From: Paraphysomonas bandaiensis
Lineage: Eukaryota > Protista > Chrysophyceae
DNA length: 64,000 nt
Direction: 5' to 3'
NCBI GenBank assembly: GCA_965644295.1
Contig: CBFFRP010000360.1
Coordinates: forward strand, 108,595-172,594
This document shows positions 60 through 60,736 of this stretch, piece by piece; the first letter of the stretch is position 1; each line of letters starts with the position of its first letter. Below the pieces are notes generated by a model. The model worked only from the letters and a program-made list of their open reading frames with translations. It was not told where the DNA came from and searched no databases. A program made the position numbers and the translations under genes.

Positions 60-1400
60 ATAAACAGAGGAGACAGTAGGGAAGAGTGTCATTGAACTCG
101 ATGGCCACTCGTGACCTGATTGCAATGGAACAATACTCATATTTTCAGTTGAAGAAGCGTCCACAGCTGGTCGTCAGTATGGGAATTATTCTGCCCTTAA
201 GACCCCCACTTCAACTCTTCTCCAACCCCTTGTATATCCTACTATTGTGCATGTTATTGAGGTATCTCTGCATTATTCCGAACGGTAGAGCCGTACTGCA
301 TTGTACGTACATACCTGACTAATATTGTATAGTATGGTTACTATCACACATATATATATATATGCAGAAGACGAAGTGAGAAGTGAGTGTTTCGTATGAA
401 GTGGAAGTGTTTCGATGGATATAAATCTACTTCTATTCTGTGAGGTGGATGATATGAAGGTATCCATATGTGGTGACTGAGATATGAGGCAGAAGGGATT
501 GGGGAACAACAGCCCCGCCGTATGTACAGCGCATACAGAGGTACTGTGTGGTATTATGTGGCTGTACGATCGTAGTACAATTCGTCTGTCAGTATTTTCA
601 CATACACACCTGAAGTGCATGAAGTTTCCAACGACTATGAAGAAGTGAACAGCGCAGTTCACATGCAGCAGAAGTACTCATAAAGAAACTTCAGATACTT
701 TTCACGGAAGTTTCTTAACAATAAATTCTATGATACTTTGATGATAGAGCTGGACATATGCTTGTGTTGGGTATCTTGTCATACACAGCATTAATATCAT
801 GTCAGCTATCATCAAAGTTTCATCATTACACTCCAGTAGTTGACATACAGGCATATTATGGAATGAATGAAAGTGAGATGTGCTGGATATGCGGTTATAT
901 CCCGACTAATCCAATACACATATGACACTTGTGACAATCAATCTGCTCATCGATGTAACCTGATTGTGTGCGCATGTGTTGGCTGATGTTTTGCATTGTT
1001 GATATTATGATCATTATAAACGCTCGAAGGATACTATATACATATTCGTGAAGACAGCATAACATGAGTACTTTGACCTATTCGTGATGAATATATGAAG
1101 CTGCTATCCTGTTCCCACAGTGGACAGTAGTGCAGTGAGCTATTCTGCTCTACAAGTCATACTCTCCACAGCAACTCGACAATTGGACACAATTGGGGGA
1201 TCAGGACCGGCGGCTCTCTTCTACTCTGGGGCCATATACAGATGGTCTCTGTCGACGTACAATGAGTATTTAGTGTAAACAGGTATTCTGTTGCAACAGT
1301 GGCCAGGGGCACAGTGATATATTTTGCTCTCCAAGTTGACAATGTTGGCAATTGGTAAGGGAGGTCAGACTCGCTTCTGGAAATATCCTTTCCCCTGCAG
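60..1400 (+). pseudogene. Degenerate WD40 gene of the Cdc20/Fizzy-related type
   Basis: Fragmentary plus-strand translations (AHTEVLCGIMW; GH...IYFAL; TRFWK) resemble Cdc20/Cdh1 WD repeats but are broken by stops and frameshifts. Confidence 0.35.
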
Positions 1401-1560
1401 ACTAGATCCTATATCCCCATGACTGATGTTAATATGTATGATTTTGCATCTATGATTTCTCTCTCTGTTGCATTAGTATAAACATATAGTTCTTTCTGTC
1501 AATTTACTTCAAGCGTAATAAGTATAATTATGGATTTGTTGTGAAACATCTATTGCTAGC

Positions 1561-2973
1561 CAGGGCTGTGTAACAACTAATTGTCAATTCGTAATTGACG
1601 CAGGTTGTAGTCAATTATAATTGCAAACGTTACTTGCTGTTCCAAGTAATTGCGATATTATTGATACAAGTAGATGTACATTAGCTGCCAACATAACTTA
1701 CACAACCACTGTTATTTCATCCCAGAGGCCACGACATATTAATTCGATCCTTCGTTGCCACCTTGAATTCTTCACGACTGCCTTTTTAAAGCAGCGTTAT
1801 GAATAATAGCAGCATTATTGCCCAGATGACGCTCGACAATCGGGTGTTTTTCGATGACTTCGTCAAGCAATATACAAACGTCGTGGAGGACGAGTTGGTG
1901 TTCATATTCATCCTACAATTCTATTGACACTCATCATCAGTGACATTGTCATCACCATCTTCGACATTGGAAAAAATTCACCACTTTGTTCTCTCAGCAC
2001 AATGTTTTTGCGGAAGAAGCTGCCGAATGTGTACGTTGCCTATTATCATTGTTCTGTAGTGTATTCCAGAGCTAAGGAATAATATACTGTTGGTTACTGG
2101 GAAGAGTCAATAACGAAGTATCTATGGGCTGTCTGCACCACAGGTCCAATGGATGCGTCCGATAACGCAAGGAACATTTATGACTGGACAGAGTGGAAGA
2201 AAACCTTCCATTCACTTTCTGTGAGAATAAATTAAATAGAAGGAAGTCTTGTTTGGGTAAAATGACTGCAAAGACGCGTAAGAAGTATTTAGGACTTTTG
2301 GAGGTGACAGTACGTGAAATCATAAAAGAAATGCTTCCAACTACGTTAATTTGATCTCAGTATAAAAGGTGCTGTATCAAGAATCCAAGGTTTACCAGAT
2401 GCAGTGACTGATATGATTCCTACTCCTCGACAGAATACCGAAATCAATACCCTTGTAAACAACTTGAAAGTTTTTGAAAGCGTTTCCAAGGTGCTTCAAA
2501 CAGTAGGCTCTAGTCAAGTGAATCTCTATGAATGTCGGAACCTTTTTGACGGCTTATTGAGAGACTTCGGGACTACATATCTCCTTTAAAGAAAAGACGT
2601 TCCATTGTTAATGACCCTTAATATGATGCTGTTTCTGAAAAATAATGGACACTTGTGGCCTGATGCATGCATATTTCAATTAATTTTGAATGAATGTGGT
2701 GGTGATCACGTCACCGATGATGGCTCCGATGTTGAGTATGAGGACAGTTGTTGAGTATGAGCAGAAGGTAGTCTTCGCTTGGCAGCGTTAATTATGTGAA
2801 CTTAACGACGGGTACTAAAAATGGAATCTACGCATGCGTTTATTTGCTGAATAATGGTACTAATTTATTGTAATATATTGCAATAGTATTGTTGGGCCGT
2901 TTAAAATTCCATCAATATTAATGGTGAGACGCTATCTAACAATAGTATTGCAATATATCGTTCCCTATCCCTG
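1561..2973 (+). mobile_element. Decayed hAT-like DNA transposon
   Basis: CAGGG at 1561 and CCCTG at 2973 with AT-rich subterminal repeats. Transposase relic 2404-2589 (FESVSKVLQ...NLYECRNLFDGLL) resembles relics at 46836-47072 and 53235-53750. No clean TSD. Confidence 0.6.
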
Positions 2974-3707: not shown

Positions 3708-5648
3708 ATGTCGAATATATCTGATCTTAACGATGATGTGTTGCGTCTCATCATCTCTATGATCCCACACACGGCTGTCCTTCCTGTGGTCATGACTTGC
3801 AAGAGATTTCAAGATACAGTCTACACTGATAAGAGCAGAGAGAGACTTGAGTCACATGCATCTCACTACTGTATGACCAACTCAATGGTCTCATGGGCTC
3901 TGTCTATGGGCTGCCCACACACACTGCTATCATATAGCTGTGCACTGGATGGCAGACTACAGCAGCTCATACATATACATGCCCTTCATACTGATACGAC
4001 CACACAGAGATCACTACACCAATCTGGTTTACGCAATTGTAGCGTTGTATCGGGTATCGAGCTTCAGATGATATGTAGTTTATATAGCCCTACATATCCA
4101 TTGTATTCAGAAACTTGCGTGGCTGCTGCAAAAGGTGGGCACTTGGATATTCTGAAGTGGCTTCGTTCACAGGATCCTCCATGTCCATGGGATGAGGGAA
4201 CTTGCAGTGCAGCTGCTGAAGGTGGTCACTTGGATGTTCTGAAGTGGCTTCGTTCACAGGACCCTCCATGTCCATGGAGTGAATCAACTTGCAGTGCAGC
4301 TGCTGAAGGTGGCCACTTGGATGTTCTGAAGTGGGTTCGTTCACAGGACCCCCCATGTCCATGGTGTGAACGGACTTGCAGTGCAGCTGCAAAATGTGGA
4401 CACTTGGATGTTCTGAAGTGGGTTCGTTCACAGGATCCGCCGTGTCCATGGAGTGAATCAACTTGCAGTGCAGCTGCTGAAGGTGGCCACTTGGATGTTC
4501 TGGTTTGGCTTCGTTCACAGGACCCCCCATGTCCATGGAATGAAAGGGCTTGCAACGCAGCTGCAAGAAGTGAACACTTGGATGTTCTGGTTTGGCTTCG
4601 TTCACAGGACCCCCCATGTTCATGTAATGAAGAAATATGCTACTATGTTGCACAACATGGACAGTTGAATGTTCTGAAGTGGCTTCGTTCACAGGACCCC
4701 CCATGTCCATGGAATGAAAAGGCTTGCAGTGCAGCTGCAAAAGGTGGACACTTGGATGTTCTGAAGTGGCTTCGTTCACAGGATCCGCCATGTCCATGGA
4801 GTGAATCAACTTGCATTGCAGCTGCAGATGGCGAACACATAGACGTTCTTGATTGGCTTCGTTCACAGGACCCCCCATGTCCATGGAATGAAGAAATATG
4901 CTTCAATGCGGCAGAATTTGGACACCTGGATGTTTTGAAGTGGGTTCGTTCACAGGACCCTCCATGCCCATGGGGTGAATATACATGCTTCAATGCTTCT
5001 CTGATGGGACACTTGGATATTCTGAAGTGGGTTCGCTCACAGGACCCTCCATGTCCATGGAATGAAAATACGTGCTTCAATGCTTTGAGGGGTGGACACT
5101 TAGATGTTCTGAAGTGGCTTCGAGCACAGGACCCTCCATGTCCATGGAATGAATGGACTTGTTTTGCTGTTGCAGAAAGAGGTGAGTGGGATGTTCTGAA
5201 ATGGCTTCGTTCACAGGACCCTCCATGTCCATGGAATGAAGAAATATGCTACTATGCTGTACAACACAGTCGTTTGGATGTTTTGGAGTGGCTTCGTTCA
5301 CAAGAACCTCCATGTCCATGGAATGAACGGACATGCATGGCTGCTATTGAAAATAGAGAATGGGAGATTCTTTTATGGCTTCGCTCACGTAATCCTCCAT
5401 GTCCCTGGAATTCAGTAACTTGCGCAGTTGCTGCGGAAGGTGGACACTTGAATGTTCTGAAGTGGCTTCGTTCACAGTGCCCTCCATGTCCATGGGATGA
5501 AGAAACTTGGATTGCTGCTGCAGATGGTGGTCACTTGAATGTTCTTGAGTGGCTTCGTTCACAGGACATTCCACTGTCAAGAGATGGTTGGGATTACTAC
5601 TCACAGGACATTCCACGGTCATGGGATGGGTGGGATTGTCACGCTTAG
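3708..5648 (+). CDS. Intronless F-box-like plus ankyrin-like repeat protein (646 aa)
   Basis: N-terminal LNDDVLRLIISM...VVMTCKRF is F-box-like. It is followed by 16 full 29-aa (87 bp) repeats of W(L/V)RSQDPPCPWxExTCxxAAxGGHLDVLK. Confidence 0.9.
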   Translation: MSNISDLNDDVLRLIISMIPHTAVLPVVMTCKRFQDTVYTDKSRERLESHASHYCMTNSMVSWALSMGCPHTLLSYSCALDGRLQQLIHIHALHTDTTTQRSLHQSGLRNCSVVSGIELQMICSLYSPTYPLYSETCVAAAKGGHLDILKWLRSQDPPCPWDEGTCSAAAEGGHLDVLKWLRSQDPPCPWSESTCSAAAEGGHLDVLKWVRSQDPPCPWCERTCSAAAKCGHLDVLKWVRSQDPPCPWSESTCSAAAEGGHLDVLVWLRSQDPPCPWNERACNAAARSEHLDVLVWLRSQDPPCSCNEEICYYVAQHGQLNVLKWLRSQDPPCPWNEKACSAAAKGGHLDVLKWLRSQDPPCPWSESTCIAAADGEHIDVLDWLRSQDPPCPWNEEICFNAAEFGHLDVLKWVRSQDPPCPWGEYTCFNASLMGHLDILKWVRSQDPPCPWNENTCFNALRGGHLDVLKWLRAQDPPCPWNEWTCFAVAERGEWDVLKWLRSQDPPCPWNEEICYYAVQHSRLDVLEWLRSQEPPCPWNERTCMAAIENREWEILLWLRSRNPPCPWNSVTCAVAAEGGHLNVLKWLRSQCPPCPWDEETWIAAADGGHLNVLEWLRSQDIPLSRDGWDYYSQDIPRSWDGWDCHA

Positions 5649-6443: not shown

Positions 6444-6915
6444 GTAGATAGCGTCCCATTAATAATTTTGCAATATATTGCGATATAGTAGATATTAGTA
6501 TCAGTATACGCTGAGCTGACTTAACAGTAACAATGTTGAAGTTTCTTTCGTCAGTCGACCTATTATTACTGTGTTGTTCCTTCTTAGCCCTCGAGTATAA
6601 TATGCTATCCTGTTTGCGTAGAATTTTTTTTGACGATGTTGAATGCCATAAACTTTTCGGCATTGTTGAGCTCAAATGACGAGGTTTTATATCCATTGGC
6701 TGGGTATTTATCCTGCGCCCACCATATCCAAGGGTCGGACAAAAAAGTCCTATAATGCTTACGATAATAGAAGTGCATTTCAAAATTTCCATGACTGTTA
6801 TTTACGGCGAGCAGACAGCGTACCATAAAACATACAATCACTCAACACAACGACACAATTAAATATATCTGCTTTTGAAAAGTCTACGACATTACTTTTG
6901 CATTAGAACTGTATC

Positions 6916-7740
6916 TCAACTTCCTGTCTTCGAGCTATGCCCAGTTTCAACAAGTTCTTCGACAATAAAATCAATTCCATCCTACGCACATACATAAAAG
7001 AAGAATTATAGTAGTAGTTGATTAAGTTATACTTGTAATCCTTCTCCAGTTTTGGCAGAGCACGGTACAATAATCCACTGCCTGCAGTCAAGCATGAAAA
7101 CATATAGTCATCATCAGCGATTTCCCGACCTGTCTCTAATCGCATGCAGATTCAATCCAGCAGTCAGTTCGGCAGCACTTAATGCGGACAGTAAGTCCTG
7201 CTTGTTAGCATATATAAGCAGTGGTACACCGGATAGTTTATCCTCTTCGAGCAATTGCTGGAGTTCTATACCGGTCTCTTCCATTCTTCTACGGTCGGCG
7301 CTATCTATAACATATATCTATACCAAATATAATTAACAGTATCGTATGTAATTGATATCAGTACGTACCAATGCATCTGTAGATTCAAAGTAGTTTCTCC
7401 AGTAAGGGCGTATAGTCTTTTGACCTATATAACAATTAACATATACATATATACACATCTATAGAGTTACAGTGATATGTGTATACAGTGATATGTAGTG
7501 TGCTGTATGATATCACTGCACAACACACTCACCTCCCACATCCCATACATTCATTTTTAAATCAGATTGAATAAGAGATTTCACATTGAATCCTTGAGTG
7601 GGAGTGACATGCTGAATATCTTCCGCTGACAGCTTCCTCAGTACGGTTGTTTTACCAGAATTATCCAAACCTAACACAAGAATACGAACCTCTCGATCGC
7701 TTCGTTTAAGTGTTCGTAGTAATCTATCTAGAATACCCAT
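6916..7740 (-). CDS. ARL3: ADP-ribosylation factor-like GTPase 3 (5 exons)
   Basis: [24 protein letters not shown]|[19 protein letters not shown] and [10 protein letters not shown], joined across GT-AG introns. Stop TGA at 6916-6918. Confidence 0.9.
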
Positions 7741-32508: not shown

Positions 32509-35500
32509 ATGCCGCAAAAATCTCTTATAGTGTTAAGTGTATTAGTTCTCTGTTTACATCACTCATTCGCCTCTCTGTCGATACATCAGTTATCCCCTCA
32601 TATATCTGAAGCAGGTGAGTGTTATGGAAGTGCTCAGAGATATGTATAACTGTGTATTATCGATTACAGCGTCGTGTACTTCGAACAATGAGTGCGGATT
32701 TGGTGAGTGTCAAGATGGGGAATGTGTTTGTTATGATATGGAACACTACTGGCCATCTGAAGGGTGTAGTACTTATCACGATGCTCCTGAGCTAGAAGAA
32801 GGGCAGTGGTGTACACCCAACGTTAATAATGCGTGGTGTAGTTATCTGGGTACGTGCAATGCCGAGGGTACTGCATGTGAGTGCGACGACGCACCACACC
32901 GACTCTCTCAGGATCGCTGTGCTGTGTTTTACTCTCCACCTCCTCTTGAGGATGATCAATGGTGTAATCCCGACCTTACCAATGCTTGGTGCAGCTACCT
33001 AGGCACATGCAACTCCGATGGCTCGGAGTGTATATGTGTTGAGCAGCCGCACCGCATTTCCGCGGACAGATGCGCGGAATGGCACGACGTTATCCCACCA
33101 ACCTCAGTTCCCACACCTGCTTCTGAAGTCCGCTCTTGTTTACGTGTAGTTGCATACGATCAATTTGGTGACGGGTGGGAAGATATTGCCAAGCTGTATT
33201 ACTGGGGACAATCATACCCTACTGGTCAAGAATTTGATGAACTTTCTGGAACGCTTTCGTTGAATGGTTGCGAGTCTATTGCAACTGTAGAATGCCTTCC
33301 TGTTGCAGAAGGCGTTAACCACGATTATTATTTCTCGTTGCGTGGGTTCGATGATATGACTGAAATTGAATCATTGCCTCAATACTACTGGGATATTCTC
33401 TACAGTGTGCAAGTTGTGGATACCAATGGCACGGTCGTATCTGAAACTCTTGGGGGATTCAATTCAACTATTGTATATCGCTATGATGTTGCATCGGAGG
33501 ACTACTCCCTTGTGTTTGCTCAAAACACGAATGGTGAACCTGTGCTCAACTCTTGTGGCGTGAATGACATATTTCCGGAAGATGTACTTTTACCTGAAAG
33601 TGCGACGTGTGCAGACATCACAGTACAGACTACAGGCACTATCAGTGCTTCAGCTATGAACACTTTGTCGGGAAGATATCGTGCACCGGCTTGGTACATC
33701 ACGGACTCTGTGAGCAAAAACGTCCTGTATGCATATGGCAGCTCTTGGGGTCCTCTACCAGTGACAGTATGTGAGACTTGCCTCGATGATGGCCAGTACA
33801 TCTTCCGCTCCACTGGTGCGTATAACCCAGCAAGTGATGATGTATCGTGGTCATTCTGTGGTGTATCGAGTACCCGTCAGTCGGAGCTACGGTTTGAAAT
33901 TATAAATGGTGAGTGTGTGGTTGACTCTTTGTTAGAACTGAGTGGTGTGTGCGGTTATCTCTATGCCGGCCAATGTGCTGCGAACACTGAATGCAACCTG
34001 GGAACATGTACAGACGGCGAATGTGTCTGTAATGATCCAGTACACTATTGGGCCTCTGAGAACTGCGCTGTGTACCATGAAAGGGTTACATCCTCTCCCA
34101 CACATGCGCCGAGTGTTGCTCCATCGGGATCACCGTCCTCCGGACCCACAGTTTCTCCTACTAGCTCACCAACGGTTCACTTACAGTCCAGTTCACCGAC
34201 ATTTGTTGCAGGTGATCACACATCATCACCTTCTTCCACTCCAACTCACGCACCGACCATGTCACCAACGACGTCTCCGACTCTGGAGCCTGGGACTACA
34301 CATAAACCTACCTCTGTGCCGTCGCTCAGTCCTACTGTGCAGTCGACGAATGAGCCAACCATGTCACCAACGACGTCTCCAACTCTGGAGCCTGGGACTA
34401 CACATAAACCTACCTCTGTGCCGTCGACGAATGAGCCAACCACATCCCCAACCATGTCACCAACGACGTCTCCAACTCTGGTGCCTGGGACTACACATGA
34501 ACCTACCTCTGTGCCGTCGCTCAGTCCTACTGTGCAATCGACGAATGAGCCAACCATATCCCCAACCATGTCACCAACGACGTTTCCAACTCTGGAGCCT
34601 GGGACTACACATAAACCTACCTCTGTGCCGTCGCTCAGTCCTACTGTGCAATCGACGAATGAGCCAACCACATCCCCAACCATGTCACCAACGACGTCTC
34701 CGACTCTGGAGCCTGGGACTACACATAAACCTACCTCTGTGCCGTCGCTCAGTCCTACTGTGCAGTCGACGAATGAGCCCACCACATCCCCAACCATGTC
34801 ACCAACGACGTCTCCAACTCTGGTGCCTGGGACTACACATGAACCTACCTCTGTGCAATCGACGAATGAGCCAACCACATCCCCAACCATGTCACCAACG
34901 ACGTCTCCGACTCTGGAACCTGGGACTACACATAAACCTACCTCTGTGCCGTCGCTCAGTCCTACTGTGCAGTCGACGAATGAGCCCACCACATCCCCAA
35001 CCATGTCACCAACGACGTCTCCGACTCTGGAGCCTGGGACTACACATATACCTACCTCTGTGCCGTCGCTCAGTCCTACTGTGCAGTCGACGAATGAGCC
35101 AACCACATCCCCAACCATGTCACCAACGACGTCTCCGACTCTGGAGCCTGGGACTACACATATACCTACCTCTGTGCCGTCGCCCAGTCCTACTGTGCAA
35201 TCGACGAATGAGCCAACCACATCCCCAACCATGTCACCAACGACGTCTCCAACTCTGGTGCCTGGGACTACACATAAACCTACCTCTGTGCCGTCGCTCA
35301 GTCCTACTGTGCAGTCGACGAATGAGCCAACCACATCCCCAACCATGTCACCAATGACGTCTCCAACTCTGATGCCTGGGACTACACATGAACCTACCTC
35401 TGTACTGTCGCTCAGTCCTACTGTGCAATCGACGAATGAGCCCACCATGTCACCAACGACGTCTCCGACTCTGAAGCCTGGGACCATACATAAACCTACC

Positions 35501-38500
35501 TCTGGACCAACGCATGAGCTGTTTCCAACGATTTCTCCAAGTTCATGTCCTACAGTAGCACCAACCATATCACCTACGGTAGTTTTGTCGTCTTCTCCTT
35601 CACTGGAGCCGGAAATAACTCATATGCCCTCCTCGGCTGCTACCACCACATCTAGCATTCCCACTATCATACCTACATGTAGTCCAACGGTTTTACTCAC
35701 CTATACGCCCTCTCTACTGCCAATTTCTTCTGATACAGCATCCCCAAGTAGTTTTCCATCTGTCTCACCAACTACATTTCCTTCTTCACCGCCAACGGTA
35801 TTTCCCACGTCCTTACCTACGTCGAGGCCCACACTCATACCCGGCACAACACATGCGCCTACCTCTCTTTTCCTAGCGGACGAGAGAGCCTCTCTGTGTG
35901 GGTTCTTGGGCACCACTAACCTAGGTAGCCTTGTTTCTTCTGGGGCGCTCTCTGGTTGGTCATGTGTAGATGAACAGGCGAATCCTTGTATTGGCTGGAC
36001 TGGCATTAGTTGCAACGGGGGACGCATCAGTGGCGTAGATCTATCTGGTATAGGTATTACAGGTACGATTCCCGATTCCATTGGTGGGCTATCTGAGCTG
36101 AGCTATATGGACGTATCGAGGAATTTTTTGGTTGGACCTTTGCCTGAATCTCTGGGTAATTTAACGAAACTGACTAATCTCTTCCTACAAGAGAACAACT
36201 TTGGATCTGTGGAACGCCGTCTGAGTAATGAGAATCCGGAAAGTCGGCGCCGTCTAGAAGATATAGAAAATGACGCCGAAGTAATTGAAAATTTGGTTTC
36301 ACTGTCGTATTTAAATATTGGTGGCAATGGATATACTGGACCTATACCGTCGAGTTTGTGTAGTATCCCTCTTCAGACATTAGTCGTGACTGCAATTAGT
36401 GAGTCGTCGTATTTACCGAATCAGTTTAGTTGTATTGCTTCCTGTCTTGCAGAAAACTCTCAGTTGGTCTTAACTATCCCTGCCGATGTTCCAATATGTG
36501 TAGTAGAGCCCCCTACGAATGCACCTACCATTGCCGCTGGTGCGTTGGCCGGCAACAATGTTTCTCAAAACACGGGTAACACAAGCATAGCCATTACCGT
36601 TGGAACTTGTCTTCTTTTTCTTATGTTTCTCGGTTGCATATTCTGTCGCAATCGAATGCAGCACAAGAAGCACGAGCGCGAGCTTGAATTGGCTGTATCG
36701 CGGGATGTCATTAAGCATGAGAAAGGTTCTGGGGAATTGCATTTGCATCGTTTGGGTAGTATGTCGAGTAGTGACAGCGATGAAGAATCGAATGGGACTA
36801 ACGAATACACCGTCAAATCAGGGACCTCTCGCAGCAAACGCAGACAGGGATACGGCAAGGTTCCATCTATGCCTATTGAGTGGTCGGATAAAGATAACTT
36901 TAAGGGAGAAAAGCCCCATAACGACGATGATTCATTCCCAATTGTGATTGATTTCAGTGACTCCGGCACGAATGATAGGGATGACATTACGGAGGCGATA
37001 TTTGGTCAGAAAAGTGTACAATCACCATCTGGCAACCATAAACGCGGTATTGTCATGCGCACCGATACAAAAGATATTTTTAAGCTTCATGATTCCACTG
37101 ATGATGGTGATGACGATGGAAATACTTCTTGTACTAGGTCTCAACGTGACACGGTTGACATGGCTGCCGGGTCGGGTGACACGTACAGCGGTATGTCAGA
37201 AATTGATATGCAGTCAAGGTCCTCGTACTTTTCAGGTTCTGAATCGCGGAATAGCTATACAGCTACGTCCTACACAGATACTCAGAATTCATATACCACC
37301 GGGTCTTACACAACGGGTACTTATACCACTGGCTCTTACATTGGTAATTCGCTTGGCAGGAGCAGCTATACTTCATATACAGGCTCCGCTAGTACCCCTT
37401 TTGAAAAGCTGGTAACTACCGGTAATACAGGACATATCAGCTCAAAGGAGCCGACACAGACGTCCAATACGTTAGGTGATGGGTTATCTCGCAGTGACGT
37501 AGCAACCAAAGCTCCATCTCACACGAACACCCAGTTATCTCGAGACGCTGAGACAGCAACGTCTTTCACCGGTGACACGTATTCGGCTTCTACTTATGCG
37601 AGTGTTGGTCCATCTCAAGCGGATGATACATGGTTTACTAGCGATACTTTTGCGAGGCAGAGTTACGACTCCAGAGATCCCAGTTATGACTCACGAGATG
37701 GTTATAGTGCATCCTCTTATACCTACACTGATCCCCGCGGTTCGAGGGACAATTATACAGCTTCCTCTTATACAGATACCCGTGATCCAAGGGATAGTGT
37801 GATGTCACAGAGCTCATTGGGAAGCTATACAAGGACGTCATATACAGATACCCGTGATCCAAGGGATAGTGTGATGTCACAGAGCTCATTGGGAAGCTAT
37901 ACAAGGACGTCATACACCGATACCCGTGATCCAAGGGATAGTATGATATCACAGAGCTCAATGGGAAGCTATACAAGGACGTCATATACAGATACCCGTG
38001 ATCCAAGGGATAGTATGATGTCACAGAGCTCAATGGGAAGCTATACAAGGACGTCATACACTGATACCCGTGATCCAAGGGATAGTATGATGTCACAGAG
38101 CTCAATGGGAAGCTATACAAGGACGTCATACACTGATACCCGTGACCCTCGCGGAAGCTATACTTCGCAAAGCTCGGCTGATAGCTACACAAGAGATAGC
38201 TATACAGCCACCTCGTACTCTCAGTCGATTCCGAGTACCTACCCTCACATTGATACTGGGGTGGGGTTCACTTCAAATCCAATGAATCGTCATACGGTAA
38301 TTGGCCAGATGTCTCCTTTCCCTATGGAGCGCACAGAGAATAATGATGCACCTCTGTCGTCTTCACCTGACCAAAGTGCAACACGAAATCCTATGATGCG
38401 TCATACCTATGCTGGGACTACAGCTGCTGCCTCCCATATACCATTCTCCGATCACTCCAGCGGGGCACAGAACCCTGGTCTCCCACCAAGCGGGGCGGTG

Positions 38501-38725
38501 CGCCCAGATGGTGTGACAGCCCCAAGCAACCCCTCTGCAGACGATCAGTTCGACGAGCAGCCAAGAATAGTTGCGCTGCCAGGTCTTCCACCTCGCGTTC
38601 CGCTAACTCGTCAGCAGTCCTCTGATACACGCGATAGTTTCTCGCTTGGCGATATATCTGAGCTCACTGATGATTTCAGGTCGCAATCACCGAGAGGGAA
38701 AAGTGGAAAGCTATTCTACTTGTAA
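32509..38725 (+). CDS. Type I membrane protein: signal peptide, EGF-like Cys repeats, PT-rich mucin repeats, LRRs, TM, S/T/Y-rich cytoplasmic repeats
   Basis: Exon 1 MPQKSLIVLSVLVLCL (32509-32614), intron 32615-32669. Plant-type LRR cap PCIGWTGISC and GTIPDSIGGL; TM IAITVGTCLLFLMFLGCIFC. Confidence 0.9.
34253..35500 (+). repeat. 114-bp (38-aa) coding minisatellite with internal deletions
   Basis: PTMSPTTSPTLEPGTTHKPTSVPSLSPTVQSTNEPTTS units; period seen between ATGs at 34568 and 34682. Confidence 0.95.
37765..38165 (+). repeat. 72-bp (24-aa) coding tandem repeat, about 5.5 copies
   Basis: TDTRDPRDS(V/M)MSQSS(L/M)GSYTRTSY. Confidence 0.95.
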
Positions 38726-49782: not shown

Positions 49783-52360
49783 ATGACAAGAATTCGTGTT
49801 GCTATACGTGTGAAACCTGAGAGTGGCGAAAAACTCAAAGGATTTGGTTTTGAACCCACTAATGATGGTGTGAGATTTGAGTTAACAGCATCTGGAACGA
49901 AGAATGAGTTTAATTTTGATCATGTGTTTGATGAGAGTATATCACAGCATGAGGTCTTCAATACTGCATGTGTACCCATTATACATAATGTTCTTGATGG
50001 GTTTAATGGTACACTGTTTGCTTATGGACAGGTATGGTGTAGTGTGTAGTACTATGTATGATATAACTTTAGATTTACTTGAATGGTAGACAGGAGCTGG
50101 TAAAACACATACAGTTACTGGTCCAGCCTCAGAGGAGTTTGAAGAACGAGGGCTGTGTATGCGTGCTGCGGATTATTTGTTCCGTCGCATTCGCTCTATC
50201 CCTGATTTTGTCTTCACTGTAAAGTTTTCTGTGATTGAGATATACAATGACAACGTAATGGACCTTCTACGTGAATCATTGCACGATTCACCAAAGCTCG
50301 TTATCGTTGATACCCCTGATGGTGTCATAGTACCGGCCTTGTATTTACTGCCGCTAGAGAACGAAGAAGAGGCATATACAAAATTATATGAAGCTAACGT
50401 CAATAGGTGCTGGCTTCTCGTGTTATCTTAGTATGACAGTAGTTTGCATATTATTGTTACCAGTATTTATGCTTCAACACAAACAATATATAGTATCTTA
50501 CTTGCATGTATACTATGATTTATTCGCCTCTGTGAACTTTGTAACCTTTGTGGGCCAGGTCAGTAGCTGAGCACCAGCTCAATCGGCGCTCCAGTCGATC
50601 CCACGTGATATATTCATTCTACTTGACCCGCAGCAAGCAGGTCACTACAGCAGACGGGGTTCAAACGGATACATCAGATGTAGTGCAGAGCAAACTACAC
50701 CTAGTAGATCTGGCTGGATCAGAGAGGATAGAGAAAACTGGTTCGAAAGGAGGGCTTGTCAAAGAAGCGACACATATTAACAAGAGTCTATCATTTCTAG
50801 AACAAGTAGTGTTATCTCTTACTAAGAAAGCGCAACAGGCGCAGATGAATGCCACTGGCACGAGTCAGATTAACAAAAAAGACTTCGTCCCTGCATATCG
50901 ATCCAGTAAGCTCACATATATACTGAAGGCACGAGTGTCGTTATTCTTACCGCTCTTGTTTTGACAAAATGTTTGTAGGACTCCCTTGGTGGTAACTGTA
51001 ACACGTAAGTAGTATGTTGCCCTATTGAGTACTTGTAACATGTTGTGAATTATGCAACTCTATAAAATGAGTACATGCCTTCCGATTAATATATGTTGGT
51101 AGGGTTCTTATTGCATGTGTGTGGCCGCATTGCAATCATCTATGGGAAACTCTGTCGACGCTTCGCTTTGCAACCCGTATGCGATGTATCGAGAATCACC
51201 CTCACAGGAACTCTCTTGTTTCTGGGGCAGGAGCCAATAGTTCAACACGTGCGCTGCAAGTCAAAATCGAATCATTGAAACGTGAGCTTGCCTTGAGAGA
51301 TATGATTGGAGGGTACACACAAGTAACTGGAGATAATACACTTAAGGGACAGGACAGAGGTCAGCTACTGTCCTCTCTCACTAAGGCACAACATCAGCGG
51401 TGTGTCAAGATAGCTTCTCAGTTTGCACTCAACAACGATGACAAGGGTGCACTGGACGTGCGGGCGCTCTGTGAGGTTCAGGCGGTTGCAAGTACCCTCC
51501 GATACGCTCTGTGGGAGGCATGTGAAGGTGATCGTTCTAAAGTCGCTGCTGCGCTAAATGCTGCTGGAGCAAGTAATGAGTTAGAAGACGATGATACCCA
51601 AGTAAATGCTAAACGATTGGTCAGTGTGCAGAGCACCATAACAGAAGTGCCTAATGAAGAGGAAGTAGAGTGCGCGAATGATGACCCGGGTATCAGTGAT
51701 ATTCCTTTATCCCCAGTGCGAAGTAACGGCGAATCTCCTGCTAAGAATTCTCCTGTCAAGTTAGTCGCTTCACCTCCTCCCGTGCCTGTGCATTCACCTC
51801 GAGCTCTTCCGGTTGTAGCAGCTGTGGACCAACCAGCTCATGAGAGCCCTCGTCACGAACGAAATGACCAGAGTGAGTTGGACGCTCCTCGAGGGCACGG
51901 AAATGATGACAGCGAAAACCAAAATGCAGAAGATGCTTTTGGACTCTTTAAGCAAAATGACGGACTAGAGTTGCATGAGAACTATGAAAATATTAAACAA
52001 GGCATAAAAGAAGCCAAGGCCCGTCAGAGAGTACTTGTGAATTTGGTCAATACTCACAAAGCGAGTATTGATGTTAAGACTGACATAATCCAGCAAATCA
52101 ATTCTGTACTGGAGATGGCGGGCGGAGTTGAAACGGAGAACGTTATTGCGGCAGGAGGATTCGAACAGTTAAATCGTGATCTCCAAGAAGCTACTACGGA
52201 CCTCACAAATGCGAAAAACCAATATAAGAAGTCTCGTACAGAATTAATTAGATGCAAAGAGCAAATTGCGGAGCTGACTCTAATGAAACAACAGGCGTTG
52301 AATACGTTAGTTAAAGCTTTTGAGGAGTATACAGCCACGATATCAGCTGATAGTTTGTGA
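49783..52360 (+). CDS. Kinesin-9 family motor (KIF9/KIF6-like), multi-exon
   Basis: FAYGQ|TGAGKT, NRRSSRSH, LVDLAGSER, INKSLSFLEQ and neck LKRELALRD. Confidence 0.93.
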
Positions 52361-54861: not shown

Positions 54862-57800
54862 TGTCAAGGTTTGACATTATATGAGAAGTATTAACTTAAC
54901 AACAGAAGGTAACTTATACTCAAAGCTGAGAATTATAAATTATAATCAATGTCTCTTATCATTCATCAATATCATGTTGTCTCCACTACCACTCATTTCT
55001 CGTACGACGATCTTACATCGTCACTACAACTTGCATCGTCACAATATTCCGTTTTACCGCTATGTGCTTATCGTCATTCATTCTCACAATACGATTAACA
55101 AGACTACAACTGTATAATACAGTAATTTAAATACCTTATAACTACAGCTTTCAATTGCTCTCATATAGCAGAACTCAACACTCCCTCTCAATTCAAAGCT
55201 GTAGATAGACTCTTCACATCACAAGACATAACTGACGGATACGCAACCACCGAAACCAAACAGGACAAACAGGTGGACGTATGACTCCGACATTTCAGCT
55301 AGTCTCACAGTACAGTCAACTGATCACTTACGTCGTTTGAACGTCTTTTCTCTAATAACCTCAACAGATGATTTTCGATCCTCTCCTAGGCATCTCTTCC
55401 TGTGTTTCTCGAAAGTTACACCACACAACGATTTCGTGAATATGTCTGCTGTCTGATCATCTGTTCCAACGTGGTACAATATGGCAGTGTTAAAGAGGCC
55501 ATCTGGATCTACGTGTTCCCTAACCCAATGGTATTTGATCTCGATGTGTTTTGAACGCTTATGGAACACCGGATTCAATGCTAAGTCACGAGCACTCTGG
55601 CTATCCAAGAAAAATGGTGTGGGTTCGCGTAGACGAAGTCCTAATTCGTCCAACACCCCCCGAAGCCATACCAGTTCTTGCATGCCAGCATACATAGCCT
55701 GATACTCACTTTGCATTGATGACGTTGAAACGGTAGCCTGTAAAATGGACTGCCAGATAAGTGGTCCACCGGCGGCAAATACTATGTATCCAGTCGTAGA
55801 TCGGCGTGACACCACATCGCCAGCCCAGTCTGCATCAGTAAAGATGTGCATGTCGAAGTGCTTACTACTGAACCGAATACCCTTTCGAACTGTACCCCTA
55901 ACGTACTGCAATAGGTACGTCATTAAATAACATGTAGCCCGGGTAGGCTTAGATGCATGTCTAGATAACAAACCAACTGCATATGCAATATCAGGGCGAG
56001 TATTCATAGATAGATATAACATGGCACCCAGTAGGCTGCGATAAGGATAATTATCTACTCCCTCTTTCTCCTCAGGTGTGAGATCGCTGTCTGCTTGATT
56101 AATTCTGTCCATTGCATCGAGGGGTAGCGGCGACTTTCGGATTTTTGATGAGGGACCGAGGAAATCAGCGAATTTGAGAAGAATCAGTCTTCTCCTCCAA
56201 CTGCTCTCTACCAGCAGTTACTAAGGCTCTATAAGCCACGATCAAACCTTTCCGAACCACGACTCTCGTAGTCCTAAACAGGAAACCCTCATCGGTATGG
56301 TAAGATCCAATCAAATGGTTGAACTCTTCAACCTGTCGAGCCTGGGGATCATGTTTAACTAACGCAGCCTCCAGCTCCTCGAAATACTCCTTCTCTCTGG
56401 GGGGAATGCTTTCGTCGAATAACACATGTATTGACACAACTTCGGACTCTCCTAGCCATATTCTGTATCCCCTCTTCTTTTTGGAGAGACCTAAAAAATA
56501 TCCAATCTGCGATTTGCCTTGCCAATTTTTTCGACGATCACCCCTGGGAGTCTTCACATAAGCTTTACACCCCCATCGACGCAAACTGGATAAATCTGGA
56601 ACAGAACCCCCAGGTACACACTCCATGGGAGACATCCATCCGCGATAGGTCCGAGTGGGCATCATGCGAATAATTTCAGATGCATATACGTAGGCATCTC
56701 ACCAGAATGGAACTGGGAATCCAGCATCTGACAGCATTGCAAGAGTTATCTCTCCCGCGGTTCGAAAGCGTCTCTCAGACACGCCATTCATCTCAGGTGA
56801 GTCTGTAGAGCTCCACGTAATTGAGGCGCCAAACTTGCTGTGAAGATACTCCTGAATAGACTTATCAATGAGTTCGGCTCCCCCGTCGGCATGATACACA
56901 GATAGTCGATGAACTCCTGGATACTTGGGTAGAAGAACCTCGACCCAATTCCTAATGTGCTCCAACACTTCACTTGCGGTCCGAGTTTTCAACGGAAACT
57001 CCCAGCATTCCTTGGTGGCCACATCTGTCAACGCTAATACATACCGGTATCCCTGTCGAGAAGGACAATTGAAATATACTCCTATATCGACAGTTACTTT
57101 TTCCAGAAACCTTGTCGCCTGTAGCTCTTCATCACTCTTCCCAGGAAACGAGATTCTGGTAATCTTCGACTTTGCACAGGCTTTGCAGATACCCTTGGTT
57201 TTCTGAAGACTCTTCTTACTCAGATGAGATCTGTTGAGGCCACTCCCTGTGAACAACCGATGTTTGAAAGCTTCTAATAGCTTGCGCTTGCTGACATGCC
57301 CGCATCGCTTGTGAAGCAATTCCAGAGGGTCTTCATTTGTTTTATCCGATAGATGTACTTCTGCAGCTAAACTCGTCAAGTCAGGTAACTCCAACAAGTC
57401 CTTTAGATCAACGAAGGGCATTCCATTATCTGAATACCTAGCTTCAAGAACAACTTCTGCATTATCCAATCGCACTATTTTTGGGGTCTCTAGCAGCTGA
57501 AGTCCATATCCAAGCGTACGAAGCATCCCTCCCGAACAAATATTCTTGACTGAGTCGGGGCATACCTTTAATTTTGTCCAGTCACCATAGTTGCCTGAGC
57601 CAGTATATCGTAAGCTGGATCCCGCTTTGGTTGTCTGAATGGTCCCTTCGTCTGCAACAAATGTCTGTAGAATATCACTGTTCTTGATGATGAAGAGTTG
57701 TTTCGACGCGCAGCTGTCTAGAAATACAATGTCTTCAGAAGTATGCAGCACCTCATCTGCAACATTCACTTCTAAGTTACTCGATTCATCATATAGCAAC

Positions 57801-59224
57801 ATGTGCACAGAATCATCCTCTTGCTCCTCTCTTTGAAGATAACGATTCCAGTCCGAGCTCTTTTTGATGGGCCTTTCCATCGTACCGTTTTTTTCGGAAA
57901 AAAGTCGTTTTTTGTTAACAGAATCCTCCGCTTTCCTTGTTTTTCGAACTTGAGCTCGATGTCTGCATTCATGAGCTCGATGTCCAGATACGCCACACAC
58001 AAAACATCCATCATCATCAGCGCCATTCTTTGACTTACTTCTTTTGGATTCTGCTTGTTGGCTTCGATGCTTGTTTTTACCATTGCGCTTCATTTGGGAG
58101 ATCTTCAGATCTTTCTTCTTCATCCAGCAGTTCTTCTGCGTGTGACCTCGTTTTCCACATTTAGAGTATGAGCATGTTACCTCTTGATCAGAAGAATTCC
58201 AATGTACTTCCGGTGCAGAAGACTCCTGTGGTAGACCCTTTGCCTGGTCGAAGCGCCTACAAATGGTGATCATCTCATTAAATGAAATATCACCTTTCAG
58301 GTAGATGTTTGTGTACAGCTGCTCCAGATCCTTCCTCGTTTCCAGCGCAGTCTGCAGCTTCGTTTTTTTGGATACGTCAGTTGGCGGCTCACCAAGTTCC
58401 GTCATTTTTTGGACAATTCCGTTCAGTCGATCAATGGCTGTACACACCAGCTCACCCTGTAGAATTCTAAATGACGCAAACTGTTTATTCAGTTCCACCA
58501 ATTCGTACTGGGTTTCCCCACGAAATCTAATAACCAATTTATTTACCAATTCACTTGCTAACATCTCCTTATCAGGATCATCAGGTGGAAGCATGTCCTT
58601 CTCTCGGAAGTATTGATCAACAATCTCAAGCGCCTCCGCAACAGGTTGAACAGCTTCGAAGATGGAACTGATGCAGGTGTCTTTTCTCTCCAACCACTTG
58701 TCGAGGTCTTCCTTATACTTGTTTTTCACAGCTGTGGACGCATTGTCAGCAGGTCGATGCGGTCGCTCTTCCAACCCAAGATGGTTCCGATTCTTTCTCA
58801 TAAGCCAAACTCTCAATCGCTTCGTCCAGTTCACAACACCGAACTGATCGAACTTCGGAAGGTGTTTCCATTCCGAACTACTTGCGGAACTACCGTCTGC
58901 TACCATGTCAAGGTTTGACATTATATGAGAAGTATTAACTTAACAACAGAAGGTAACTTATACTCAAAGCTGAGAATTATAAATTATAATCAATGTCTCT
59001 TATCATTCATCAATATCATGTTGTCTCCACTACCACTCATTTCTCGTACGACGATCTTACATCGTCACTACAACTTGCATCGTCACAATATTCCGTTTTA
59101 CCGCTATGTGCTTATCGTCATTCATTCTCACAATACGATTAACAAGACTACAACTGTATAATACAGTAATTTAAATACCTTATAACTACAGCTTTCAATT
59201 GCTCTCATATAGCAGAACTCAACA
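54862..59224 (-). mobile_element. Ty1/copia LTR retrotransposon, recent, RT-deleted
   Basis: 319-bp TG...CA LTRs at 54862-55180 and 58906-59224; TSD AGGCC; PBS TGGTAGCAGA; PPT TGAGAGGGAG. Gag CCHC, protease FLDSCAS, GAG-pre-integrase, integrase and RNase H (TDADWAG, RSKHIEIKYH) are present. Confidence 0.97.
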
Positions 59225-59560
59225 AGGCCTAATAGTATAATAGCAAGACACGTTTGAACAGAGCGTTAGCACCACACATGTGCGTATCTTGTACAGTCGC
59301 GATATCATGTATAGTTTGGTAATTATTCAGTCTATTTGGTATTTCATTGTATACGTGTGTTGTATTCACGCGTTCAGGGATATATGTGAATCAATGACTC
59401 CTAATACCAATTACATGTGTGCGTTTGTTCTACATGTGTACTACACGACTAAAAACAAAGAAACGCATGGAAGAATAAAACCAAGAATATCAATATTATT
59501 ATATTATCATGCATCAAATATAATAGCGCATTGGTTAGAGTATGCCATTGAGTGCAAGGA

Positions 59561-59604
59561 GCTTTATCGGTTATTGATAGAAGTGTCAACAACGTCATTC
59601 AAGC
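59561..59604 (-). promoter_or_regulatory. SECIS-like element in the SelW 3' UTR
   Basis: Minus strand GCTT-GA-ATGAC-GTTGTTGA-CACTTCTA-TCAATAAC-CGAT-A-AAGC: AUGA/GA quartet, 8-bp upper helix and a short lower helix. Confidence 0.7.
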
Positions 59605-59656
59605 GACTATGAACACCACAGCAGCACTGCCAACTACGCCACTACCATTTGATAGC

Positions 59657-60140
59657 TTAAGCCTCGAGGGCCTCTCGGATTTTATCGGCCACTCGCATCT
59701 TTTCCTCCATCGATTCGCAACGGCCCTGAAAGCAAATATAAAGAGTTACAATACGAGAAGCCAGAACTTTCAATGCATCTGACCTGACCACCCTGCTTGG
59801 AATGTATTAATTCACCAGTGCTTAGGATAGTAACTTCAAAGTTTCCGGTCGTACCAGGATCTGCACACAAGTTTAGTAAGTAAATGACAGTCTTCCTTCA
59901 TATCGACATACCTCTCAACTCAACAACCTCAACTTCATCAGGAAACTCTTCCTGGATAAAGGCGGCCAGCTGACGGCTATATAATCACAATTATAATTAT
60001 AAGGTGATATATGTATATCCCCACCTGAACCGCCCATAGCCTCATCCGCCACAATACTGAATCTGTTACCATAAACTATTACAAGGAACTATGCATCTGT
60101 ATTACCTTACCTGCACTTGAAGTTTCTTATCAGCTGACAT
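59657..60140 (-). CDS. SELENOW: Selenoprotein W (Rdx family), 92 aa, 5 exons, Sec TGA at 60044-60042
   Basis: Exons 60140-60111, 60062-60025, 59976-59912, 59860-59784 and 59725-59657 give MSADKKLQVQIQYCGGUGYGRFSRQLAAFIQEEFPDEVEVVELRDPGTTGNFEVTILSTGELIHSKQGGQGRCESMEEKMRVADKIREALEA. Confidence 0.93.
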
Positions 60141-60736
60141 ATTGCAATAGGATTGAATGTGTAATAAACTCTGTGTGTTTAATTTAATGAAATTATGCAA
60201 TCTTTTCTATGAAAACACTGCACTGCATGTGATGCAAGCAAAGAATTCCACACATATATACACGCATATATGACTTTATACTTGATCGTATGCGCGACTG
60301 TACAAGATCGCAATCGTTATACCCCAATTAAAAAAACAATCCCCTAAAACTGACGAAGAAAAATAGAAGAACTTTCTCCAAGTTCTGCTGTATGCTGATG
60401 GGAATTTCTATGTACGTGTGGTTATGTACAGTATGTATGGACTGCATATGTGAAACTCTGTGGGTTTTTTCCTCATCTAGAAACCCCACCTGTGAAAGGA
60501 AATGTTTCACATATGCCTCGAATACGGACAAATGTATAGTAGATAATCATATTCGATGCATATGTGAAACATTTGCTTTCACAGAAAAATCGGCACTTTT
60601 ATATGAGGAAACTACAACTTTATAGGGAAATAGCCACTTTATTAGTTGTAAAACACTGTTAGAATACTCTACTATTCTCCTTGAACGTCATATCCGTTAG
60701 TGGCATATATCAATATTCGACCATACTTACTGCAAA

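Follow-up and report, generated by a model that had tools for sequence, protein, structure and literature searches.

An expressed five-exon selenoprotein W gene followed by a compact, AAR-less candidate SECIS hairpin in a Paraphysomonas bandaiensis genome

An apical AAR motif and a long helix II count as universal traits of eukaryotic SECIS elements, and the standard finders are built around them; in animals, the AAR and a fixed helix II length are needed. Canonical eukaryotic elements (forms 1 and 2, RF00031) reside in the 3′ UTR and possess an AUGA/GA kink-turn (K-turn) core, helices I and II, and an A or G before the AUGA. Above the tandem of G.A pairs they have a non-Watson-Crick pair and then a purine-pyrimidine pair, features identified as SBP2 determinants in mammalian SECIS elements (PMC1874613). 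Lineage-specific signatures surround the constant core in Ostreococcus, with a G before the core and a long mini-stem, and in Dictyostelium, with UGUA before the core and U-U after it (PMC2375036). The SECISearch pattern, NTGA-N10-13-AA/CC-N15-39-GA, accepts CC in place of AA (PMC2375036). The literature that we searched contained no description of a compact or AAR-less SECIS in diatoms. As for the protein considered here, known SELENOW (Rdx, PF10262, 2NPB) is about 90 amino acids long and has an N-terminal CxxU, in which U is encoded by UGA, as well as GxFEV and hSK motifs; it is among the most widely distributed algal selenoproteins (PMC7539508). A SECIS-first survey in 2007 reported 16 selenoproteins in Thalassiosira, and a homology survey in 2020 gave 20–44 selenoprotein genes per diatom (PMC7539508).

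We analyzed a 64-kb stretch of DNA (the window, ~40% G+C) from a 62.5 Mb assembly of 669 contigs, a genome that also contains at least seven silicon-transporter loci. A preliminary description of the window had proposed five exons with GT-AG introns, spliced to a protein of 92 amino acids with CGG-TGA-GY, GxFEV and LIHSK. The sequence bears this out on the minus strand: scripted splicing of the five exons yields a 279-nt coding sequence (92 amino acids plus TAA) starting with the ATG at 60140, and the four introns, each GT..AG, are 48, 48, 51 and 58 nt long. Of 24 public runs, which are marine, 22 contain the stretch wholly or in part; eight are recorded as RNA, and four were compared here, namely a marine metatranscriptome (X1), two runs from the source organism (X2 and X3) and a DNA run (X20). 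The gene and its transcript are laid out as follows, in window coordinates.

60111–60140, minus strand: SelW exon 1, with the ATG at 60140 and 10 codons; junction 60111/60062 in X1 and X3 RNA contigs
60025–60062, minus strand: SelW exon 2, encoding the C-G-G-U redox motif; sequence and RNA contigs
60042–60044, minus strand: in-frame TGA, predicted to encode Sec (codon 17), ~286 nt of mRNA 5′ of the putative SECIS core; beyond it the frame runs on at 55–58% identity to metagenomic SelW genes with a TGA in this position
59912–59976, minus strand: SelW exon 3; junctions 60025/59976 and 59912/59860 in X1, X2 and X3
59784–59860, minus strand: SelW exon 4, encoding GNFEV ... LIHSK; RNA contigs
59657–59725, minus strand: coding part of SelW exon 5, with the stop codon TAA at 59659–59657; sequence and RNA contigs
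59476–59656, minus strand: SelW 3′ UTR, 181 nt; poly(A) at ~59476 in X1, X2 and X3 contigs

All four junctions were present in spliced RNA contigs from X1, X2 and X3, with gaps of 58, 51, 48 and 48 nt bounded by CT..AC on the plus strand, and the X20 DNA contig was unspliced and colinear with the genome across 59345–60400. On the 5′ side, an RNA contig extends to at least 60163. On the 3′ side, the transcript contigs of X1, X2 and X3 stop at 59476 and continue with 17–22 untemplated T residues (plus strand), representing the poly(A) tail; the poly(A) site shared by three RNA runs thus sets the length of the 3′ UTR at 181 nt.

The surroundings of the gene also carry other features. The SelW poly(A) site is directly followed by a 740-aa ORF of a Ty1/copia-type retroelement (56699–58921, minus strand), which shows weak similarity to gag, zinc-knuckle and integrase. 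The segment 59000–59420 is a high-copy repeat: its word depth is hundreds of times that of its flanks, and DNA as well as RNA runs contain many contigs with variants of it. It is probably the LTR of the Ty1/copia-type element. Elsewhere in the window we noted an ankyrin-repeat ORF at 3708–5648, a KIF9-like kinesin domain at 51119–52360, and a 2036-aa open frame at 32615–38725 (plus strand) that has PT-repeat and leucine-rich-repeat matches and sits within an island of 53% G+C.

The spliced protein carries IQYCGG-U-GYG, GNFEV and LIHSK, with YCGG-TGA-GYG occupying codons 13–20. We retrieved 83 metagenomic DNA stretches with a degenerate YCGGUGYG pattern, and the TGA of the gene aligned with a TGA in 80 metagenomic SelW loci. 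A tblastn search with the spliced protein, in which Sec was represented by X, returned a SelW group with 47–58% identity over 86–89 amino acids, TGA at the same position and the same C-terminal ...ALEA. The best match, the metagenomic contig L074 (55% identity, E 2e-27), has TGA in the same CGGU motif; its piece after Sec scored 23.2 bits against Pfam Rdx PF10262 (cut-off 22.6), and the only match of this piece among solved structures (PDB) was mouse selenoprotein W, 2NPB. Exon 4 of our gene alone scored 16.2 bits against the same family (E 0.012; cut-off 22.6 bits). The small size of the exons kept the gene from being found in six-frame Rdx family scans of the genome. Like SELENOW in length and motifs, the protein differs from mammalian SelW in having CGGU in place of CGAU, and its coding region is split over five small exons. 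We conclude that the gene is a new SelW of the ordinary type, which is already known in algae, and that nothing in the protein is functionally unusual.

Several related loci showed features of their own. Among the metagenome contigs L041, L079, L062, L084, L099 and L110, several carry two to four tandem SelW genes, each with its own CGGU. L074 contains, at 6719–7026 (plus strand), a full-length Rfam match to 5_ureB_sRNA (78.3 bits, cut-off 40), a Helicobacter family that is out of place in this eukaryote-like contig; the match is probably spurious or compositional. The genome itself has a second SelW-like gene (contig C398, ~1490–1960, plus strand) with a CGSU motif and LIHSK. Behind this gene is a SECIS-like element whose internal loop is larger (~4 x 5 nt) and whose top pairs poorly; the covariance models R1 and R2, described below, did not match this element.

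The preliminary description had considered that the genome might lack Sec machinery, in which case its reading would fall. This is not so: the genome encodes a tRNA-Sec (69.6 bits, cut-off 47; classified by ARAGORN as SeC with anticodon TCA) and SepSecS (E 1.6e-126). We also looked for an SBP2 homologue in the genome and found none. A weak L7Ae match on contig C297 was considered as SBP2 and rejected, as it resembles RNase P Rpp38 or NHP2.

The same description had placed an AUGAC/CGAU quartet, closed by an 8-bp helix and an 8-nt loop, about 55 nt after the stop codon. The hairpin is indeed present, 58 nt past the SelW stop and within the 181-nt UTR defined by RNA. Its parts, all on the minus strand, are listed below.

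59555–59610, minus strand: putative SECIS element as delimited by covariance models (R3 leave-one-out 26.2 bits, E 0.003; R2 42.1 bits)
59604–59601 with 59564–59561, minus strand: helix I, GCUU/AAGC, 4 bp
59600–59599, minus strand: unpaired GA before AUGA
59598–59595, minus strand: AUGA, 5′ side of the K-turn core
59594, minus strand: C after AUGA
59593–59586 with 59577–59570, minus strand: helix II, GUUGUUGA/UCAAUAAC, 8 bp with one G-U
59585–59578, minus strand: loop CACUUCUA, 8 nt
59569, minus strand: C before GA
59568–59567, minus strand: GA, 3′ side of the K-turn core
59566–59565, minus strand: UA between GA and helix I

With the canonical SECIS this hairpin shares its 3′ UTR site, the AUGA/GA core, both helices and the purine before AUGA. 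Above the G.A tandem it has a C.C pair and next a G-C pair, in agreement with the SBP2 determinants established for mammalian elements (PMC1874613). Unlike the canonical SECIS, it has no unpaired AAR or CC; its helix II (8 bp plus one mismatch), its loop (8 nt) and its internal loop (4 x 2 nt) all differ from the canonical ones, and C takes the place of the K that the UGAN/KGAW consensus has before the 3′ GA. It is the only AUGA...GA hairpin in the SelW UTR with both flanking helices. RNAfold reproduced the fold, but with a stability not above that of shuffled sequences (z = −0.73).

The 181-nt UTR yielded no match to the SECISearch pattern, so that a canonical SECIS further down, which the preliminary description had named as an outcome that would speak against it, is absent from the transcript ending at 59476. 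The hairpin departs from the pattern in two ways: no unpaired AA or CC stands 10–13 nt from the core (positions 11 and 12 after AUGA are A-C), and the distance from AUGA to GA is 26 nt against a minimum of 27. An Rfam scan of the locus gave no SECIS_1 match even at E ≤ 10 (cut-off 35 bits), and the best SECIS_1 score in the whole genome was 22.6 bits, below that cut-off. We considered this miss as a sign of oddity and dropped it, since SECIS_1 also failed to match in any of 40 SelW and other selenoprotein loci of other organisms, including SECIS elements of canonical appearance in SelW genes of other protists; because all 40 comparison loci were missed, failure of the Rfam model is not diagnostic.

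Other selenoprotein genes of the genome were found by six-frame family scans that reported in-frame TGA codons. The scans yielded five GPx genes, two MsrB genes, SelM, Sep15, a SelT-like gene and the second SelW-like gene mentioned above; a thioredoxin-family scan flagged no TGA. Hairpin scanning and folding revealed one design behind all those genes: helix I, G-R, AUGA, C, helix II, Y, GA, two bases, and the other strand of helix I, with C directly after AUGA in 12 of 13 elements. Since MAFFT applied to all elements misplaced the 3′ GA, we used a seed alignment of six sequences (model R1) and model-based realignment instead. In 128 kb, R1 matched such elements only, five of them outside the seed. 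We then used a leave-one-out model, R3, made from 10 elements of other genes (GPx, MsrB, SelM/Sep15 and SelT) and excluding that of SelW. Searched on both strands of the window with filters off, R3 scored 26.2 bits (E 0.003) at the SelW hairpin, which was the only match in 64 kb with E < 2, the next best reaching 13.6 bits (E 2.1). Thus, the hairpin stands above chance as a motif and not by its folding energy.

To probe specificity we used a sister model, R2, to which the SelW element does contribute. On 100 kb of new loci it matched only three new TGA genes (MsrA on C150, MsrA on C289 and GILT on C234) and gave no match at Cys-form or unrelated loci. In the metagenomic SelW loci (380 kb) it gave nine matches above 15 bits, all located 330–400 nt 3′ of the closest SelW orthologs and on the same strand, and the remaining two matches scored 14.2 bits; the common core of these metagenomic elements is GAUGG-AAUGACGG...CCUGAUA-UCAUC. 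Altogether R2 was checked on ~600 kb of other DNA, with matches only downstream of selenoprotein genes, and its whole-genome search, in which 150 of 15,600 first-look candidates were scored, returned training members only. Across 22 elements, pairing in helices I and II was 89%, compared with 52% when shuffled and 33–52% when slid, figures inflated by an alignment that was fitted to the model, and double changes occurred at all 14 helix pairs. C.Y followed by G-C or G-U was found in 18 of the 22, and SelW has C.C followed by G-C. One MsrA element, on C289 (1941–1994, plus strand), otherwise agrees with the model at 24.4 bits but has a core with AUGG rather than AUGA, a change predicted to disrupt one of the sheared A.G pairs; this could be a variant of the core that is tolerated or a case of mis-registration by the model.

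These data bear on whether the UGA might be a plain stop codon, with the locus decaying or giving rise to a non-coding transcript and the hairpin arising by chance or being an unrelated K-turn. The insignificant folding energy would suit such a view. However, the frame stays open through four spliced exons past the UGA, the identity to many SelW genes with TGA at the same CxxU position is 47–58% over 86–89 amino acids, the mRNA was abundant enough to be assembled from a marine metatranscriptome, and the hairpin fits a model that matches selenoprotein 3′ UTRs only. We regard a plain stop as highly improbable. The hairpin is instead very likely a working SECIS, as judged from its sequence and context.

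The preliminary description had further suspected an unusually short SECIS that standard finders would miss, and had proposed examining the 3′ UTRs of other selenoprotein genes for the short form. The short form proved to be general: 17 elements behind 15 UGA-containing genes from at least eight families have one common core, in which 15–45 nt (median 27) separate AUGA from GA; in nine of the 17, neither the 5′ nor the apical side has an unpaired AA. Helix II is as short as 4–6 bp in GPx C41, SelM C167 and GPx C335, and in MsrA C150 it is a perfect 13-bp helix with a tetraloop and no unpaired AA. The suspicion is supported, with two corrections: the SelW element is of middle size for its genome, being the shortest only among the SelW genes compared, and the Rfam miss proves little. 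Like the Ostreococcus and Dictyostelium elements, those of this genome display a lineage-specific signature around the constant K-turn core: here AUGA is preceded by G-A and followed by C, and Y precedes GA. In those elements and in the CC variants, an apical AA or CC stands at a fixed distance on a long helix II, whereas in this genome the top varies, often being very short, and many elements lack the motif. These comparisons support a compact, AAR-less SECIS type that appears characteristic of this genome.

The compact look could, in principle, be an artefact of minimum-energy folds, the elements being ordinary SECISes with a shifted AAR equivalent, for example the A at position 11, and the lineage in no way special. 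AUGA-N10-AA is present in four elements of the genome (GPx C335a, Sep15 C233, MsrB C19a and C19b), and SelW has A and then C at those positions; moreover, the closest metagenomic SelW orthologs, with 29–45 nt from AUGA to GA, have longer tops that contain AA or AAA. Yet no AA occurs anywhere between AUGA and the loop in MsrA C150, GILT C234, SelT C395, GPx C145 and MsrB C425, and other elements have a helix II of only 4–6 bp. In addition, a crude scan of SelW genes from other lineages showed a clear AUGA-N11-13-AAA, with 31–45 nt from AUGA to GA. We therefore think it rather unlikely, though worth keeping in view, that a displaced AAR accounts for the compact type.

Whether one such hairpin suffices is a separate question. 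Two genes of the genome are followed by tandem SECIS-type hairpins: MsrB on C19, with near-copies 148 nt apart (1332–1397 and 1184–1249, minus strand), and GPx on C335 (1069–1120 and 943–999, minus strand). SelW might accordingly be a real selenoprotein gene whose hairpin is insufficient alone and requires a structure near the UGA, a weak AU-rich AUGA hairpin around 59510, or a longer isoform. Besides the two tandem cases, the shortness of the SelW element, its lack of an AAR and the second ATGA...GA stretch at 59510 are in keeping with this idea. This stretch, which contains the only other ATGA in the SelW UTR, has neither helix I nor the GA-AUGA-C signature, and it was absent from the R3 output even with filters off and E ≤ 10; the poly(A) site is the same in three runs, and most of the selenoprotein genes examined in the genome have a single element. 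Insufficiency of the hairpin thus seems to us to have only a small chance of being correct.

Given these results, we consider it highly probable that the locus is an expressed five-exon SelW gene whose UGA at codon 17 is recoded to Sec by the single K-turn hairpin in the 181-nt UTR. The SelW hairpin is a member of the genome's own SECIS type, consisting of a short helix I, an unpaired G-A, a core of tandem sheared pairs formed by AUGA and GA, a non-Watson-Crick C.Y above the core, a purine-pyrimidine pair and then a variable, short helix II with a loop of unconserved sequence. We infer that an L7Ae protein of the SBP2 type recognizes the core together with the lower part of helix II and, once bound, recruits eEFSec with Sec-tRNA to the ribosome, and that the apical AAR and a fixed length of helix II may be dispensable in this lineage. 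The gene model, its expression, the UTR limits, membership of the hairpin in the motif, covariation of the helices, tRNA-Sec and SepSecS are observations; binding of a protein, dependence on SBP2, insertion of Sec and dispensability of the AAR are inferences. More generally, we suggest tentatively, and at slightly less than an even chance, that the SECIS has here been reduced to the K-turn core, a short helix I and a second helix that may be only 4–8 bp long, the AAR and a fixed distance from core to loop having become dispensable.

The interest of the locus lies in the signal behind the gene, as the whole selenoproteome of this organism apparently relies on a compact, core-only design (17 elements, 15 genes, at least eight families). 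If this is true, the SECIS complex would make a different contact with the ribosome or eEFSec. Confirmation by a reporter would define a minimal eukaryotic SECIS and provide a very small cassette (~45–55 nt) for selenoprotein engineering. SECIS-first searches would then also undercount the selenoproteins of such organisms, which may explain the gap in diatoms between the SECIS-driven count for Thalassiosira and the later, homology-driven ones.
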